From positions 173,530 through 237,529 of the forward strand of contig NW_027192193.1 in NCBI RefSeq assembly GCF_041956535.1: a DNA stretch of 64,000 nt, read 5' to 3'. Under the pieces are notes generated by a model that was not told the origin of the DNA, did no database searches, and worked only from the letters and a program-made list of their open reading frames with translations. A program made the position numbers and the translations under genes. Positions within the stretch are counted from its first letter, which is position 1. Each line of letters starts with the position of its first letter. This DNA is from Calcarisporiella thermophila CBS 279.70. Lineage: Eukaryota; Fungi; Calcarisporiellomycota. Below are positions 21,442-39,705 of this stretch, one piece after another.

Positions 21442-21802
21442 AGCCACGGTAGACCTTTCAGAGCATTTTTTTTTCAATCCTGTATGTTCCTTAATGGATA
21501 GACCTAGACACACAGAGATGGCGTGTGTGTATCTATACAGCGGAGGTTGCCACTCCGCATAACACCTTGATTTGACTAGATAGCAAACTTGTTTCTTAAT
21601 TTGTTTTCATAATTCTTGCATTTAGTAATGATTAAAATTCGAGATAAAGGCAAAACTCAAAAGAGAACTATCCTAAAAAAAATAATGATGAAATTAAAAC
21701 ACTTTATGAAATGTGAAGATCCCTTTGGGGCCAGTATGAGCGCCTAATATTAAAATCGACAGGGCAATTCAGAAAAATAGCGATGAAAAGTGAAAAAAAG
21801 TA

Positions 21803-21874
21803 TGGGACGTGAGAGACTCGAACTCCCAACCTTCCGCTCTGGAGGCGGACGCGCTACCATTGCGCCAACGCCCC
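21803..21874 (-). tRNA. tRNA-Trp(CCA), intronless
   Basis: Reverse complement GGGGCGTTGGCGCAATGGTAGCGCGTCCGCCTCCAGAGCGGAAGGTTGGGAGTTCGAGTCTCTCACGTCCCA. Acceptor GGGGCGT/ACGTCCC, anticodon stem TCCGC/GCGGA with loop CT-CCA-GA, T-loop TTCGAGT; a T-run terminator follows. Confidence 0.95.
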
Positions 21875-21961
21875 ATTGATTTCCATTTTTTGTTGTGGCT
21901 TAAATCATATACATCTAGAAATTTTGGCTCTAATTTTTCCTGTCTGGAAAACATTAATTTT

Positions 21962-22039
21962 GGGGGAGGGTTAGTGTAGTGGACTATCTCTGGGATGCCG
22001 ATGAGAACGGCGTGGGTTCGAATCCCACTTTCCCCACCA
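21962..22039 (+). ncRNA. tRNA-like Pol III head lacking a normal anticodon arm
   Basis: Acceptor-like GGGGGAG/TTTCCCC followed by A-CCA, T arm GTGGG-TTCGAAT-CCCAC, D-like hairpin TAGT/ACTA and hairpin GCCG-ATGAGAA-CGGC. No canonical anticodon stem at the expected position. Confidence 0.65.
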
Positions 22040-22535
22040 GCACTTACTCTTAGTTTGTGACTGCTGTCCACTTGATCAGAAGCTGAGTCTTGATTATTGA
22101 AAAGATCGCCCTTACGATAAGTACAACGATTACATTGGTTTCACATACATGCTATTCACGTCAACTACGATACACGCATATCGATTGAATGTCTATCGAT
22201 CAAGGACCTATATCTCGTTATGTTAAGTCCGTTGACATTAACTTCATGTAATATATGGAAATTAAATAAAAGTTTCCATTAATTGATCAAAAAAAAAAAA
22301 ATCGAACCCCCACCCCACTTCTCATGTTATTCTTTGATATCCACAGTTAGTTGAGTTTCACCATTCCCTTATCTATTTGAGCTGAAAGTCGATATGACCA
22401 ACATATCATTTCGATCTACGATATCACCCAAAGCTTTAACTTTGGCTTCCCTTTCACTTTATTGCTTATAATAATGTAACAATTGTATTTTAGAGTCTTC
22501 CTATACAATAAAGACTCGGCATTGATCAAAAAAAA
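21962..22535 (+). mobile_element. tRNA-derived SINE-like retroposon flanked by a 17-bp target-site duplication
   Basis: Exact direct repeat TGGAAAACATTAATTTT at 21945-21961 and 22536-22552. The element starts with a tRNA-like head (A box TAGTGTAGTGG 21972-21982, B box GGTTCGAATCC 22015-22025) and ends in ATTGATC-A8. An internal ATTGATC-A13 lies at 22282-22301. Confidence 0.75.
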
Positions 22536-22552
22536 TGGAAAACATTAATTTT

Positions 22553-22909
22553 CCGGGCTTTTCTCAGGTCTCAACCGCTATCAATAGTATAGCAATAAGC
22601 AAGCAATATCAAACGGCTACAAAAATAGGTAGAAATCCTTAGGAGAAATCCAACTACAAAAATTGGAGACCAGGGGCAGTACCTGGGTGATTTTGACGTA
22701 GAAGTCTACCCTTTCATTCCCTTCAACTAGATACATCCCAAGGTAGGAATAAAAACCTGGAAAACATTAACCAAATCAGGATGAAATTCACACTCTCTAC
22801 CATTTCTTACATGTATTTCTTGTTTCTGAGGACTATCAAGTCACTATATTAAGAACGAAAAAGGATACTTTTTAATAAAGATCCTCCTAACAAAAAAAAA
22901 CATTAACCA
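22553..22909 (+). mobile_element. Two further short A-tailed inserts (probable 5'-truncated retroposon 3' ends), each followed by another copy of the target sequence
   Basis: 22553-22756 ends AATAAAAAC and is followed by CTGGAAAACATTAACCA (22757-22773). 22774-22900 ends AATAAA...A9 and overlaps AAAACATTAACCA (22897-22909). Confidence 0.55.
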
Positions 22910-23177
22910 TGGGCTACCAACGGGAAATAGTGTCAACTGTCCGTGATGCAGCAATCTGGATTTTCAATCGATCCAGATTAACGATAATAATATACAACAC
23001 CCAACCAAACGAAATAGCACTCGCTGAACAACTAGGACTCGAGATGCAAAAAATTGTTAGGTCCAAAAGTGGTCCGCGTTCATAAGGGATAAAAAAGAAG
23101 ATATCAATGTGCTTTGGTGTAAAGGAAATTGAATACAAGTCCAAGGAGACGAAATATCCTTCATTCAAAACTCTTAA
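22909..23177 (+). mobile_element. Degenerate C-terminal fragment resembling L1/Tx1-clade non-LTR ORF2
   Basis: ...VRDAAIWIFNRSRLTIIIYNTQPNEIALAEQLGLEMQKIV, then after one frameshift KWSAFIRDKKEDINVLWCKGN*IQVQGDEISFIQNS*. By eye this matches the W..W..RN..IF / F...W...V....L.F pattern of ORF2 tails. Confidence 0.4.
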
Positions 23178-23786
23178 CTCCCAACATCGTCTATCTTTTA
23201 ATACTATCCTTTCACCTTTTTAATTTGATTTTAAAAATGAAGGTCAAACCTTACACCTTGTAGCTATTCTTCACTCTGTCTTGCTGTCTAGGTTCAGTTC
23301 CAATGGATACGTTTTTCCTTTTTCAAATTTAAGGATTTGAAGCAAACCAGGGGGAAGAGGGGACGAGATCAGCGCTAGGGCGATCCCCACCCAGGGGCTC
23401 CTACTCCGACCTTTCCCCTCAAAATTAACAAGCCATCAAGCCCCAGCTTTCTAAAGCGAGAGTACAAGGAGCTTTGCGTGGAAAATCGCTATTCCGAGAG
23501 TATCTAAGGCCCCTCACTAGCAATATCCCTGCCCTCGGACTGTTTTCATTCCAAGCTCATACCAATGCTGGTTTCCTAGCAATTGGTAGGACTGGCCGAT
23601 TTTTCAATAAGGGTGAATATACCCTATTTTTTCACTAATTTGATGTAGGTTCATGACTGCGCTGCATTATATAGGGATGACACGAACTGGTGGAAATAAG
23701 AATCAACTTGGTAGTCGAAAATTGAACCGCCACCGCCCCGTCTCCCAAAATTCTCCGTTCACTTGTCATTTATAAGCTAATTCAAC

Positions 23787-35066: not shown

Positions 35067-38000
35067 TCAAATGCTCATCCGCCGCGCAACCTTGCCACGC
35101 CGCACCTTGCGCTCCTTTTCGGCACTCTCCACCACCATGTCGGGAAGCTTCCCCTCCTTCCTCCAAATCCGCAGCTGCTCCTTGCCGTACTCGTAGCCGA
35201 CCTGCAGGATCTCGTCGTATTTCCCAAACTCCAGGGTCCCGAAGTTCTGCACCGGCGCGCGCATGTAAAAGCACCCGGGGGTGGCCTTTGCCTCCTCCAG
35301 CTGCTTCACCGACGAAACGTACGCAAGCCGCGACTGGATATCCGCAATGGTGGGGATGCGGTTGTGCCGGCGGAAGGGGTTAAGCGAGTTCAGGATCACC
35401 CACCACCCAGACAGAGAGTCGCCATAGTTGACGGGCGACGTGTCGTCTGCCGACGCAACGTCCACGGCAAAAATGGTATCGGTGCCAAGGCTCTTCATGA
35501 TGCTCACCTAAAAAGAAGAAAGCAAGCACGGTATACCAGTGTCAGTGATGTACAATTAAACTCTCTCGGTGCCCTCCACCCCCTCTCCCCTCTCCCCTCT
35601 CTCCTCTCTCTCGCCCCCATCCCAACCAGCCGCTCGCAGGTACCTACCGGGAGAATGTCCATGTATCCACCATCAACCAGCATGTTGCCATTGTCGCAGA
35701 GGGGCGGCATGTAGCCGGACAGACTCATGCTCGCCCGCACGTAGCGCCAGGCGTAGCCCGTCGTGTGGACCTCCATCCGACTCCATGTGATGTTGGTGGT
35801 AACGCAAAAGTAGGGGAGCCACATGTCCTCGATCATCGTGTCGAAGAAGCACTTCCAGATCGCGCGGTTGAACTCATGCCCGGTGAACCACGCGGTGACC
35901 GGGTAGGTGAGGTCCGCGAGCTGCCGCCACACGGACGACACCCGCCCGGAAAACATCTTGGCCGGACCGATCACCCCCAGGTGGTCAGGGTACTTGGCAT
36001 AGAGCCCGCCCACAAAGGCGCCAATCGACGTGCCCCCAATCATGTCGATGGGGATCCCCTCCTCCTCCATCGCCTTCAACACCCCAATGTGCGCGATCCC
36101 CCTTGCACCGCCCCCTCCCAGCACCAGCCCCACCGACTTTCCGGTCAGTCTCCGCGCGAGCCGCGCGAAATCGCTGCGGTTCCCCGAGAAGTACGCGGGG
36201 CTCACGGACGTCCCCTTCTTCAGGAACTGGAACTGCGTCAGCTGGCGCTGGTAATACTTCTGCAAGTTCTGTTTGATGCTCACGAGAGTGAGCTTGCGGG
36301 TCAGCCGCGGGGCGTCGTGGCCAGAGAGGATGGGGCGGCGGATCTCGGGCATGCACACGTGGTGGTGCGCGTGGATCCACATGCGGTTCTGGAAAGCGCA
36401 TTAGTTTGGATGCTGTTAGTCCTGCAATGGCCCAATACGGCATGGCGTGCCACTTACCTTTAACCATTTCTGGGTGGAGCCCCTGTCAAAATGCCGGCCT
36501 GCATGCAGCAGGACGAGCTCCTTCCGTGCCGTCGTCTTGGTGTGCAGAAGGAATCGTTCGAATTCGCCGATGGAGGGGTCGTCGTCTCCCAGCCCAACAA
36601 GGAGGATGCAGTCCGCCTGCCGAATGCAGGTCTGCGTCCACGGGGTGTTGACCCCACTGTCCGCCAGGTAGAGCACGATTCGCGCACGCTCCTCCTGCTC
36701 CGCCAGCCAGTTCATGAGCTTGAGTTTCCCCATCTTGGTGAACGCGTGCTTGCCCATCGCCCCGACCACGGTCGTTTGGTTCAGCAGCGTGGTGGTCGCA
36801 CCCACCCCCTCCAGGGCGGTCTTCAATCGCTTCGCAAATTCCGCGACGGGGACCCCCGCGTTCACCGGCAGCAACCCGACTGTCTTCAGGTTCACGTTGT
36901 TCTTGCCGAGCGACTCCTCGGACGACTTGGTCAGTCTCCCCGCAATGACACGCGATATCTGCAGGGTAATTTCTGGGTGGCGCATGGCCAGCGCATTGAA
37001 GAGTGTTTTGGGCATGCGCGCCAGCTCCGTGTCGCGGATCGCGTGCAGCGTCGAGGGACGCGCCGAGCCCACGAGAACCTCAAGCTCGCCAACGCTGTCG
37101 CCCTGGCCGTATTCGCGTTGGATGTCAATGCCGCCCCCAGGCCGCTCGTTGATGGTACGCAGCCGTCCATTGAGAACAATGTAGATGGAGTCCGCAGCGT
37201 CGCATTGGCGGTATATAACGTGTCCCGCATTGACCTGAACCCACTCCATGGCGTAGTCGATTTGAAGCACTAGTTTATATGCATAAAGGTTAGAGAGAAG
37301 AGTCGGGAACTGCCACCGCAGGCGAGGCCGTTCTGGCCGGGGAAAAAAAAAACTCGTGTAAACCTACCCAAAGGGGAAATGGAGGTGATGAGCCGTTTGG
37401 CGAGCGTGAGAAGTACCCGTGGATGACGCTCCATTATACGATCTAAGCTCTCCTTGCTCAAGTAGCCCACGTACGTGTCAGTGCTGGCGCAGATGTTGAC
37501 AAAACTCGGATACCCGCTCAGTGCCGACAGATACCCAGCCAGTCCCCCCGGTTTCACCATAAACACCGAGCGTACATCGCCTCGCTTATTCTGTTTTGCT
37601 TTATCGTTACCAGCCTCCCGGCCTAACCCTCCGGCCTCCGCACTCATTTTACGATCTATCTCACGTCGTAGCCATTCCTTCCGCTCCTGCTGCTGGGTCA
37701 CCGGGGGAGGGTTTGTCTCTTCGGTGTATGGCAAAATGCTACCCTCGGCCGCCCCATCCTCCCTCTTCACAATGGACACATCCAAAAGCCCGTCGATGAC
37801 GAAAAAGAGGCCCACGTTCCGCTCATTCTCGCGCACCAACGTCGAACCTTGTGGGAAGAAGAGCAGCTCGACCTCGTTCTCGAGCTCGCTATTCGTCGTG
37901 GAGGCCGTCTGGGTCGATTCCGTCTCGAAGTCGTCGAAATAGTCGGACATCCCGGCAGGCGCATTGGAACGAGCCCGCCTCCCGGGCCCCGACGCTGACA

Positions 38001-39705
38001 TGCCCGTGGGCGTGGAGGCGGATTTTCTCGGCGGGATGGGCGGCTCGGCCAGCCCGATTGCCCGAGCAATGGCATCCATCACCACATCCCGCAGAGTCAG
38101 GCTATCTTCTGTCTCGGGCAACACGTCGGGGCGTGATTTCTCCGAGGGAGCTATCGAGAGCGGCGAGGTTAACCCCCGCGTGAATTCATCGTCCACCAGA
38201 GCACGTCTCGCCAACGTCGCTTCCCGTAGCGCCTGCCTCGCTTTCCGCCTTCTCAGCGTTGCCAGTCCGCTGTCACTCATTTCGGACGCCGCAGCATTCT
38301 CCATAAATTTGCGTCGCATCCCCTCGAGCACGCTATTGTCGATCAAATTGGGGGGCAAATCGTATCCGGAAATAGCGTTCATCCGGCGCTCGATCCTTAG
38401 TAGCTCGGGAGTGAGCCCAAGATATCGGTTGCTCGTCAGAAAAGTGACGCGCTGGAATCGCGTTAGAATCACTTGCACTATATGGGCCGCCGCATTTGGG
38501 TATTTGCGGGTTAGGCGTCGGAATGCCTCTGCGGGAATCACCGCGAGAGTAGTATCAATGGTGGCGCGCGCAACAAGCAAGTTGGTAGATTTACGGCGAG
38601 CCTGAGAAAGCGTAGAGCCGGCATCGCTCCGGGTATCGGCAAGATATTCCTCCTCAGCAAGGTCGACGCGCGAGGATGCTAGAGAATCGGGTCGAGCATA
38701 TCCTTCAGCGTCGGCTTGGTCGAGCTGTGGGAAGACCGCCGAGAGGTCCTCCGGATCTGGGGATGTGTCCCGCGATCGTGCATCCTTTCCAACTAGCCTA
38801 GGGCTACCCGATGGGTAGGGCTGCTGAGACATGGCCATCGTCATTGGGGTTGCGGACGCCAGATTGGAGGAGGTCCGGCCCTGAGAAATCTTTCTCTCAC
38901 GCCTTGGGTGCCTTCCCGGCCCCATATGCTCCGCCATACTAGCGCCGTTATTGTCATGCTTCAATTTGATGTCCTCGGTGAACAGAGAAAGGATGGTAAA
39001 TAAGCTTGACAATGTGCCTCCGGCGCGCACCTCATTCAGCAGGACAAAATCCGAAGTCGAATCCTCGCCCTCGTCGCTGAAATTGCGATCGGACGCATCC
39101 TCATTGCGTGTAACATAAACCTGCACGCATCCATCGACAACAATGTAGAAAGAACGCTCCTGCTCCGGATCGCGGAACAAGGTATCTCCAGCGATGAGCT
39201 TACGCGTCTGAAGGTGACGCGCCAATTCATGGAAAACCGGCTGCTCCAAATAGCCGAAGATCTTGATCGATTGTAGGAATGCACTCAAAAACTCATCTGG
39301 GTAGTTTTTGAATCCAGGCTTCTCATCATCATTGGCGGTGTCCGGTTGCAGATCGAATGAGGTCTGAAGCTTTACGGTTTCCTGTGGGAGTCGCGAGTAC
39401 TTTGTAAGCAGGCGATATCGCACCACGATGTAGGTTGCAAACATAACCAGGAGCACCACCGCGAGAAGAGTGGTGAAGTTGAGCTGAAGCGTGAAAGACC
39501 ACGTGAGAATGCGGTAGGTGACGATGGGAAGGGTGATGGTTGCGAACGATACGAGGCGATAGAGGAGCGAAGGAAGAGTAGAGAAAAAGATATGGAAAAG
39601 TAGGGCGGAGAGGCTGCCAGAGGAGCGCGCTGGTGCCTCAACGCCGACAGCCGTGGCGACAGTGGGGACACTGTCGAAGACCGAGGCGGAAGTGCTCATT
39701 TCCAT
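35067..39705 (-). CDS. NTE1: Lysophospholipase NTE1 (patatin-like, with cNMP-binding domains); 4 exons
   Basis: N-terminal TM; YPDEFLSAFLQSIKIFGYLEQPVFHEL; cNMP domains; SDFARLARRLTGKSVGLVLGGGGARG, GGTSIG, RYVRASMSLSGYMPP, LVDGGY. Confidence 0.96.

Follow-up and report, generated by a model that had tools for sequence, protein, structure and literature searches.

How did one short sequence come to occur four times between a tRNA-Trp gene and a decayed retroelement, each time at the border of another repeat? The case in question lies in a 64,000-nucleotide stretch of DNA from the fungus Calcarisporiella thermophila CBS 279.70 (contig NW_027192193.1, positions 173,530 to 237,529), which was analysed as a whole and is referred to as the window. 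The initial annotation had proposed serial target-primed insertion at a fixed position upstream of the tRNA gene, and our analysis found the same geometry throughout the genome. We conclude that the locus is very probably a landing pad of a position-specific system of retrotransposons that lack long terminal repeats (non-LTR), in which L1-type long interspersed nuclear elements (LINEs) and at least two families of tRNA-derived short interspersed nuclear elements (SINEs) insert upstream of tRNA genes with a constant spacing. For comparison, 82 genome loci besides the window were used (designated by L-numbers, such as L002). The layout in the window is as follows (ORF, open reading frame; UTR, untranslated region; Pol III, RNA polymerase III).

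21802-21875, minus strand: tRNA-Trp gene, anticodon CCA (ARAGORN; 67.6 bits with the Rfam tRNA model), the Pol III gene marking the target.
21876-21943, no strand: unique spacer of 68 bp from the tRNA 5' end to duplication copy 1; repeat coverage nil.
21944-21961, plus strand: duplication copy 1, the upstream copy of the youngest insertion; its first 14 nt are the original flank.
21962-22301, plus strand: SINE-1 (module 1), 340 bp, multi-copy, with a tRNA-like head.
21962-22039, plus strand: tRNA-like head of SINE-1 (78 nt; contains an A box and a perfect B box and ends in CCA).
22253-22279, plus strand: 3' hairpin of SINE-1 carrying AAUAAA (z = -2.9).
22289-22301, plus strand: A13 tail of SINE-1.
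22302-22307, plus strand: TCGAAC between the SINE-1 tail and module 2, identical to the flank of the contig 22 locus (L002).
22308-22535, plus strand: module 2, a 228-bp element derived from a LINE 3' UTR, with a terminal hairpin, ATTGATC and an A8 tail.
22536-22552, plus strand: duplication copy 2, identical to copy 1 at 17/17 nt; the next layer begins with its last four T.
22549-22756, plus strand: module 3, a 5'-truncated SINE-2 copy without a tRNA-like head; 90% identity to L054 (1030-1209).
22757-22773, plus strand: duplication copy 3.
22774-22896, plus strand: module 4, the last 123 bp of a LINE-C 3' UTR, with an AAUAAA hairpin (z = -2.9) and an A9 tail; 93% identity to L031.
22897-22909, plus strand: duplication copy 4.
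22905-23181, plus strand: module 5, the oldest layer, a decayed and 5'-truncated LINE-C; 83-85% identity to L035, L029, L058 and L014.

The four copies of the motif (13-18 nt), which lie between tRNA-Trp and module 5, are all present exactly as the initial annotation had written them, and the A-rich tails said to precede the downstream copies were located directly before them (A8 at 22528-22535, AATAAAAAC at 22748-22756, and A9 at 22888-22896). The modules point away from tRNA-Trp, all of them being on the plus strand and the tRNA gene on the minus strand. They had been called unrelated, but are in fact a tRNA-headed SINE, a LINE 3' UTR-derived element, a truncated second SINE, and two LINE-C pieces. 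A genome search found all five to be multi-copy, which excludes single-copy modules. The 12-mer core of the motif occurs exactly three times within 830 bp. When at most one mismatch was allowed, four matches were found in the window against 0.44 expected, a number reached in 0 of 100 shuffles. No occurrence was found in the 82 other loci, which are rich in the same element families, and the 28-Mb genome as a whole contains the 13-mer just eight times, three of them at the tRNA-Trp locus and five as scattered singles. Since the motif is rare genome-wide and absent from element-rich loci, it is a locus-specific duplication, and an origin as an internal part of one element is excluded. The four copies are nested target-site duplications of four retroposition events at the same 4-bp spot. 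All four element 5' ends are located 83-87 bp upstream of the tRNA-Trp 5' end, and the edges of the duplications that face the tRNA gene at about -69 to -73 (negative numbers denote positions upstream of the mature tRNA 5' end), which refines the earlier estimate of about 70-90 bp.

The order of events can be read from the duplications. The original flank is CTGGAAAACATTAA followed by the LINE-C fragment (module 5). Module 4 was inserted first, duplicating AAAACATTAACCA; module 3 was inserted next, duplicating CTGGAAAACATTAA; and the last event was the insertion of SINE-1 together with module 2, duplicating TGGAAAACATTAATTTT, the last four T of which are the first bases of module 3. Neighbouring copies share distinctive ends because successive insertions each duplicated the previous junction, and the reconstructed order accounts for the shared ends noticed earlier. 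Serial delivery, put at three cargoes or more in the initial annotation, is thereby refined to four events, with modules 1 and 2 as a single cargo. The nested duplications place the youngest insertion nearest the tRNA gene, as had been suggested. The divergence of each layer from its nearest relatives, about 2-3%, 10%, 7%, and 16% from the tRNA-proximal layer outward, appears roughly consistent with this order. Neither a fifth motif copy nor an A-run was found downstream of module 5, the 3' end of which is not delimited.

SINE-1 and the 228-bp module 2 arrived as one composite, because no duplication copy lies between them and one perfect 17-bp duplication flanks both. The same pair is located upstream of a tRNA-Leu(TAG) gene in L002 (1478-2100; contig 22, 567.8-568.4 kb). 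In L002, module 2 is flanked by a 16-nt duplication ending in TCGAAC, and SINE-1 is flanked by AAATCGAACCC, which spans the TCGAAC flank and the first bases of module 2. These nested duplications indicate that the pair was assembled in situ at that locus. The window copy keeps a TCGAAC of the L002 type between the A-tail of the SINE and module 2; the other module 2 copies start 6 nt later. The presence of this foreign hexamer, together with only one duplication of its own (17 nt), indicates that the window unit is a retro-copy of a read-through product of L002 or a sibling.

Is this geometry peculiar to tRNA-Trp? SINE-1 was followed in 30 loci chosen by similarity to SINE-1 and in 40 loci around tRNA genes, the latter chosen out of 63 listed by tRNA score alone, irrespective of repeats. 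Thirty-seven copies in this sample were 5'-intact. Twenty-four of the 37 lie 73-97 bp upstream of a tRNA 5' end (median 83.5, mean 83.2, standard deviation 4.6), and all 24 are divergent from the tRNA gene, the genes representing 18 anticodons. The probability of obtaining 24/37 by chance is about 1e-74, if some 300 tRNA genes are assumed. This sharp divergent peak contradicts a random placement relative to tRNA genes. Among the remaining 13 copies, four have N sequence over most of the 200 bp expected to hold the tRNA gene, one is located at a contig end, and several stand behind another element in a stack. One of the latter, L005, displays a nested duplication that again points to serial use of one site, and its N block begins where the tRNA gene is expected.

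The positions of all library elements gave the same picture. Around 62 tRNA genes, a set that includes the SINE-selected loci, these elements occupy 0% of the region from -1 to -60, and the occupancy steps to about 55% between -71 and -100, the level that applies from -90 onward. The upstream occupancy is 0.55 for divergent elements versus 0.02 for same-strand elements, and the downstream occupancy is about 2%. Among the 40 score-chosen tRNA genes, 14 have a SINE or LINE whose start lies at -66 to -95, and six more have N blocks starting at -76 to -95, where insertions start; the true occupancy of tRNA genes is thus probably above the count. In at least 21 of the 40, a repeat or an N block begins between -70 and -95. 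Repeat boundaries determined without the library have a sharp peak at 70-89 bp as well: of about 640 alignment ends within 400 bp, 349 fall there. The fixed distance and fixed orientation are accompanied by the hallmarks of target-primed reverse transcription, namely an A-tail, variable 5' truncation, and target-site duplication. The target is defined by position and independent of sequence, with a strict orientation and serial reuse.

Random insertion followed by selection, which would spare only the copies in a harmless zone upstream of tRNA genes, might be considered in a compact, gene-dense 28-Mb genome, where strong purifying selection is expected. However, selection cannot yield a precision of 5 bp, 100% divergent orientation, and empty regions from -1 to -60 and downstream. 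In addition, the SINE-1 copies are young, differing from the consensus by 1-6% and retaining intact duplications, which leaves little time for sorting. We regard this explanation as highly improbable. A still smaller probability, close to negligible, is given to the duplication of whole tRNA-plus-SINE units, by segmental duplication or gene conversion, in place of independent insertions. The clustering of tRNA genes and the upstream flanks shared by some of them are in favour of such duplication, but the 24 copies lie beside tRNA genes with 18 anticodons, and each SINE copy has a different distal flank and its own duplication of about 11-19 bp.

Some further observations concern the surroundings of the tRNA genes. 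The N blocks 76-95 bp upstream of six tRNA genes are found, for example, in L051, L045, L039, L050, L053, and L066; other N blocks cover the expected place of the tRNA gene beside SINE copies in L005, L010, L017, L023, and L030. Clustering of the tRNA genes is strong, and often copies of one isoacceptor stand head to head or in tandem at intervals of a few kb, as on contig 8 (936-1123 kb), contig 29, contig 10 (204-214 kb), and contig 24 (86-89 kb), and the gaps between the clustered genes look filled by retroelement stacks. In L031 (1200-2900; contig 17), two stacks that run in opposite directions join at their tails, the left one starting from a tRNA-Thr gene and the right one being ascribed to a Pol III gene beyond the segment analysed. 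Such a junction accounts for the few "same-strand" elements that lie far upstream of tRNA genes. One call of a same-orientation LINE-B at -95 did not look LINE-like on inspection and was treated as unclassified.

A second kind of module lies between the LINE/SINE insertions and the tRNA genes. These LTR-like modules of about 65-85 bp start with TGTTAC, TGTTGC, or TGTTGG, are located 10-17 bp upstream of the mature tRNA 5' end, and belong to the following families.

First family: L015 (1431-1500), L019, L018, L029, L003 and L008.
Second family: L006, L024, L056, L064 and L068.
Third family: L025, L013 and L010.

The modules resemble the outer ends of LTRs from Ty3/gypsy elements that entered at the Pol III start site, which is where yeast Ty3 inserts. 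They are interrupted by the LINE/SINE insertions at about -83, the nucleotide hit differing from locus to locus. With an LTR-like layer and a LINE/SINE layer, the tRNA genes appear to carry two tiers of targeted retroelements. The sharing of these upstream modules of about 70 bp by many tRNA genes would also speak for a sequence-specific endonuclease that recognises a conserved motif upstream of tRNA genes. However, no motif common to the duplications or flanks of 29 SINE-1 copies was found. Insertions occurred in unique DNA (the window) as well as in three different LTR-like families, and within one such family different nucleotides were hit at the same distance from the tRNA gene. Recognition of a motif is therefore very unlikely. 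In the window itself, TGTTGTGGC at 21891-21899 starts 16 bp upstream of tRNA-Trp, with a position and a start typical of the LTR-like modules; the stretch has no match in the other loci compared and may be due to chance.

What are the elements that use the site? For SINE-1, at least 40 copies were scored at 94-98% identity, of 311 candidates in the genome search. Its B box (GGTTCGAATCC) is perfect and its A box matches at 10/11 positions. The head gave a tRNA-clan match and has a cloverleaf-like fold; in another copy it scored 24.4 bits with the Rfam tRNA model, under the 29-bit cutoff, which marks it as tRNA-like and not as a tRNA gene. The best candidate for the parent among the tRNAs sampled agrees with the head at only 52/75 nt. 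No T4 run was found in SINE-1, and its 3' end consists of a 9-bp AAUAAA hairpin, a short linker, and the A-tail. The window copy differs from the 30-copy consensus at 11 positions. Judged by these sequence features (a short, non-coding, multi-copy unit with internal A and B boxes, an A-tail, and duplications), SINE-1 is a tRNA-derived SINE. The hairpin, TTGATTGATC, and the A-tail are common to SINE-1 and an abundant LINE-type tail family, and the tail family closest to SINE-1 is identical to it at 22/24 nt before the A-tail. Terminal hairpins of the same layout but with differing stems occur in SINE-1 and three LINE-type tails; SINE-2 is without a hairpin. Longer SINE-2 copies (L054 and L069) run in the 5' direction into a tRNA-like T-arm and B box.

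The other modules lead to LINEs. Module 2 has copies of 95-98% identity with the same 5' end in L003, L017, L040, and L002, and resembles the 3' UTR that follows a LINE ORF in L003. Module 4 aligns to the 3' end of longer LINE-C copies (L035, L029, and L014). Module 5 retains about 88 C-terminal codons, interrupted by a frameshift and stops, with the ORF stop at 23175-23177 and a protein-level match to L031. The genome contains Ty3/gypsy elements and non-LTR reverse transcriptases (RTs), and fragments of non-LTR RTs from at least three families are found within the tRNA stacks. A LINE-A fragment starts 82 bp upstream of a tRNA-Lys(CTT) gene, and a LINE-B fragment about 78 bp upstream of a tRNA-Arg(TCG) gene. 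In the best-preserved ORF (L075), an RVT_1 domain is present, and zf-RVT in the adjacent downstream frame. This ORF matches human L1 ORF2p with E = 3e-68 over 574 residues, far better than R2, and L1 ORF2p is by far the best match for the RT among solved structures. The nearest RT relatives in the database are metagenomic L1-type ORF2 proteins (37-42% identity) that have APE (apurinic/apyrimidinic endonuclease), RVT_1, and zf-RVT, preceded by ORF1. An ORF1-like sequence is present in one stack (L042). We judge the RT-bearing elements at tRNA sites to be L1-like on the strength of these matches. No tRNA gene was found in the metagenome contigs of the nearest RT relatives (P0001-P0003), which at 4-5 kb are too short to be informative. 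In L059 (1580-1643; contig 12), a 62-bp inverted LINE-tail fragment directly precedes a 5'-truncated LINE-B, an arrangement that twin priming (5' inversion) would be expected to leave and that is known from mammalian L1.

The proposed mechanism is as follows. LINEs with ORF1 and an ORF2 carrying endonuclease, RT, and zinc-finger domains would integrate, together with the SINEs, by target-primed reverse transcription. From the geometry, the first nick would be made about 68 bp upstream of the mature 5' end, in the strand that is sense for the tRNA, and the second about 15 bp further out, near -83. Such nicks would place the element 5' end at about -83 and the A-tail away from the gene, and would produce a duplication of about 11-19 bp. 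Since it would be the distance from the tRNA gene, and not the sequence, that marks the site, each insertion would recreate the target, the next event would enter the proximal duplication copy, and the stack would be youngest nearest the tRNA gene. By analogy with TRE5-A (PMC5911963), tethering of the LINE particle to the initiation complex of Pol III (TFIIIB/TFIIIC) may set the distance. The internal A and B boxes of SINE-1 presumably serve for its transcription, and its LINE-like 3' hairpin and A-tail for its capture. The youngest event in the window would have mobilised a read-through product consisting of SINE-1, 6 nt of foreign flank, and an adjacent piece of a LINE 3' UTR.

Several points weigh against parts of this proposal. 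For three of the 37 SINE-1 copies, no Pol III gene was detected within 1.5 kb. No intact autonomous LINE was seen beside a tRNA gene, the copies read being 5'-truncated or N-interrupted, and no APE domain was found in the loci examined. The PF14529 endonuclease model gave no match. In favour of the proposal, an APE match and an RT match are present in a single open frame of 1372 aa on contig 3 (about 773.8-778 kb, minus strand), which looks like an intact LINE, and other copies with APE are located on contigs 32, 26, and 23. No RT lies within reach of the tail family closest to SINE-1 in any of the copies listed, and the autonomous LINE partner of SINE-1 is therefore putative. The tether to Pol III factors is proposed purely by analogy. 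As for the youngest layer, the SINE parts of the window and L002 belong to different subfamilies with different diagnostic bases: the two copies differ at 22 sites in the first 270 nt or so, versus five in the remaining 304 nt (Fisher p = 2.5e-4). Template switching between SINE RNAs or later gene conversion is suggested as the explanation of this mismatch. Finally, four 5S rRNA genes were scored, two of them in tandem on contig 31 (280129-280655, 408 bp apart), and none is near a listed SINE or LINE, as judged by coordinates. The 5S genes may not be targets, which, if real, would argue against a simple tether to TFIIIB only.

The 5S genes found without a nearby element would also fit a reading of the position from chromatin, in which the endonuclease would cut where the first positioned nucleosome upstream of an active tRNA gene has its edge. 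Nucleosome surfaces shape the integration of yeast Ty1, and -83 lies outside the usual TFIIIB footprint, which is a further point in favour of chromatin. On the other hand, the insertions form one sharp peak (standard deviation 4.6 bp) with strict orientation and no periodic multi-peak pattern, and all four layers in the window entered the same 4-bp spot though each insertion alters the distal DNA. We consider chromatin reading unlikely, and prefer insertion at a distance measured from the tRNA gene.

The known system that is closest in behaviour is TRE5-A of Dictyostelium discoideum (together with TRE5-B/C, and NLTR-B of Polysphondylium), which is of the L1 type, with ORF1 and an ORF2 carrying APE, RT, and a zinc finger (PMC5911963, PMC5006619). 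These elements insert at a fixed distance upstream of tRNA genes in opposite orientation, carry an oligo(A) tail, produce a target duplication, and form clusters by repeated hits (PMC5911963, PMC5006619). Fixed spacing, divergent orientation, A-tail, duplication, and repeated hits at tRNA genes are all shared by the system described here. The likeness is one of behaviour; the RT itself was compared with L1, R2, and database proteins. The spacing differs, being about 83 bp in this fungus versus 40-54 bp for TRE5 and 39-64 bp for NLTR-B, as does the host, a zygomycete-grade fungus versus an amoebozoan. In this fungus, at least two families of tRNA-derived SINEs dominate the site, which is not reported for dictyostelids in PMC5911963 and PMC5006619. 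TRE5-A also targets 5S genes, whereas no sign of such targeting was seen for the four 5S genes compared here by coordinates only. The data support the view that the system represents TRE5-like behaviour in a fungal host, with another spacing and with tRNA-derived SINE partners.

Fungal retrotransposons that likewise use Pol III genes as safe havens are Ty3 (and Ty1/2/4, Tj1 of S. japonicus, and Ylt1/Tyl6 of Yarrowia). These elements have LTRs and an integrase and insert at the start site (Ty3) or in a broad nucleosomal window (Ty1), whereas the insertions described here display target-primed reverse transcription, A-tails, and a single peak at -83. This genome has both the LINE/SINE layer and a Ty3-like layer, the LTR-like ends of which lie at -10 to -17. 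SINE-1 also resembles the SINEs of stringent LINE/SINE pairs (UnaL2/UnaSINE1 of eel) and the T+ SINEs with AAUAAA, sharing the tRNA-derived head with A and B boxes, the LINE-like 3' stem-loop, and AAUAAA just before the A-tail. Those SINEs are dispersed, whereas SINE-1 is strictly targeted to Pol III genes and its partner LINE is still conjectural. With L1 3' transductions and chimeric retrocopies, the youngest layer in the window shares the transport of downstream flank and a neighbouring element; here the transducing unit is a Pol III-type SINE and not L1, and its 5' 270 nt resemble a different SINE subfamily.

Among the cases of Pol III-gene targeting listed in a review of 2018, the non-LTR ones are all from dictyostelids, and the fungal ones are all LTR elements. 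Ma et al. (2009) describe co-localisation with tRNA genes in Rhizopus only for Ty3/gypsy elements. In the one literature collection searched, which is no proof of novelty, nothing was found on LINE/SINE targeting of tRNA genes in early-diverging fungi, nor any paper joining 'upstream of tRNA' with Mucor*. On balance, we favour the view that an L1-type lineage in a deep-branching fungus evolved a Pol III-gene tether independently of the dictyostelid TREs, with an anchor at -83 that was inherited by at least two SINE families on about half of the tRNA genes, as a second tier outside a Ty3-like tier at -15. If true, this would be the first position-specific non-LTR/SINE system targeting Pol III genes to be described in fungi.

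The targeting of tRNA genes is a textbook case of retrotransposon safe havens in compact genomes. Studied non-LTR cases are confined to social amoebae, and how the Pol III machinery positions a LINE is still unclear. A second system, fungal and with another spacing, strict orientation, young copies, and small SINEs, would provide an independent test of which features are necessary. It would also supply a compact LINE/SINE pair that is site-specific by nature, for use in studies of targeted insertion or in its engineering. To annotators working on the genomes of early-diverging fungi, it accounts for the ordered repeat stacks beside tRNA genes.

The proteins encoded in the window suggest a host of zygomycete grade that has no close relatives among sequenced genomes, and a feature search yielded Mucoromycota clusters. 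Elsewhere in the window, an open frame of 811 aa on the minus strand (37270-39705) corresponds to the N-terminal part (cyclic-nucleotide-binding) of an NTE1-type lysophospholipase. Its identity to database proteins (from Endogonales, Mortierella, Glomeromycotina, and Basidiobolus) is 43% at most, which indicates that the genome is isolated among sequenced fungi.

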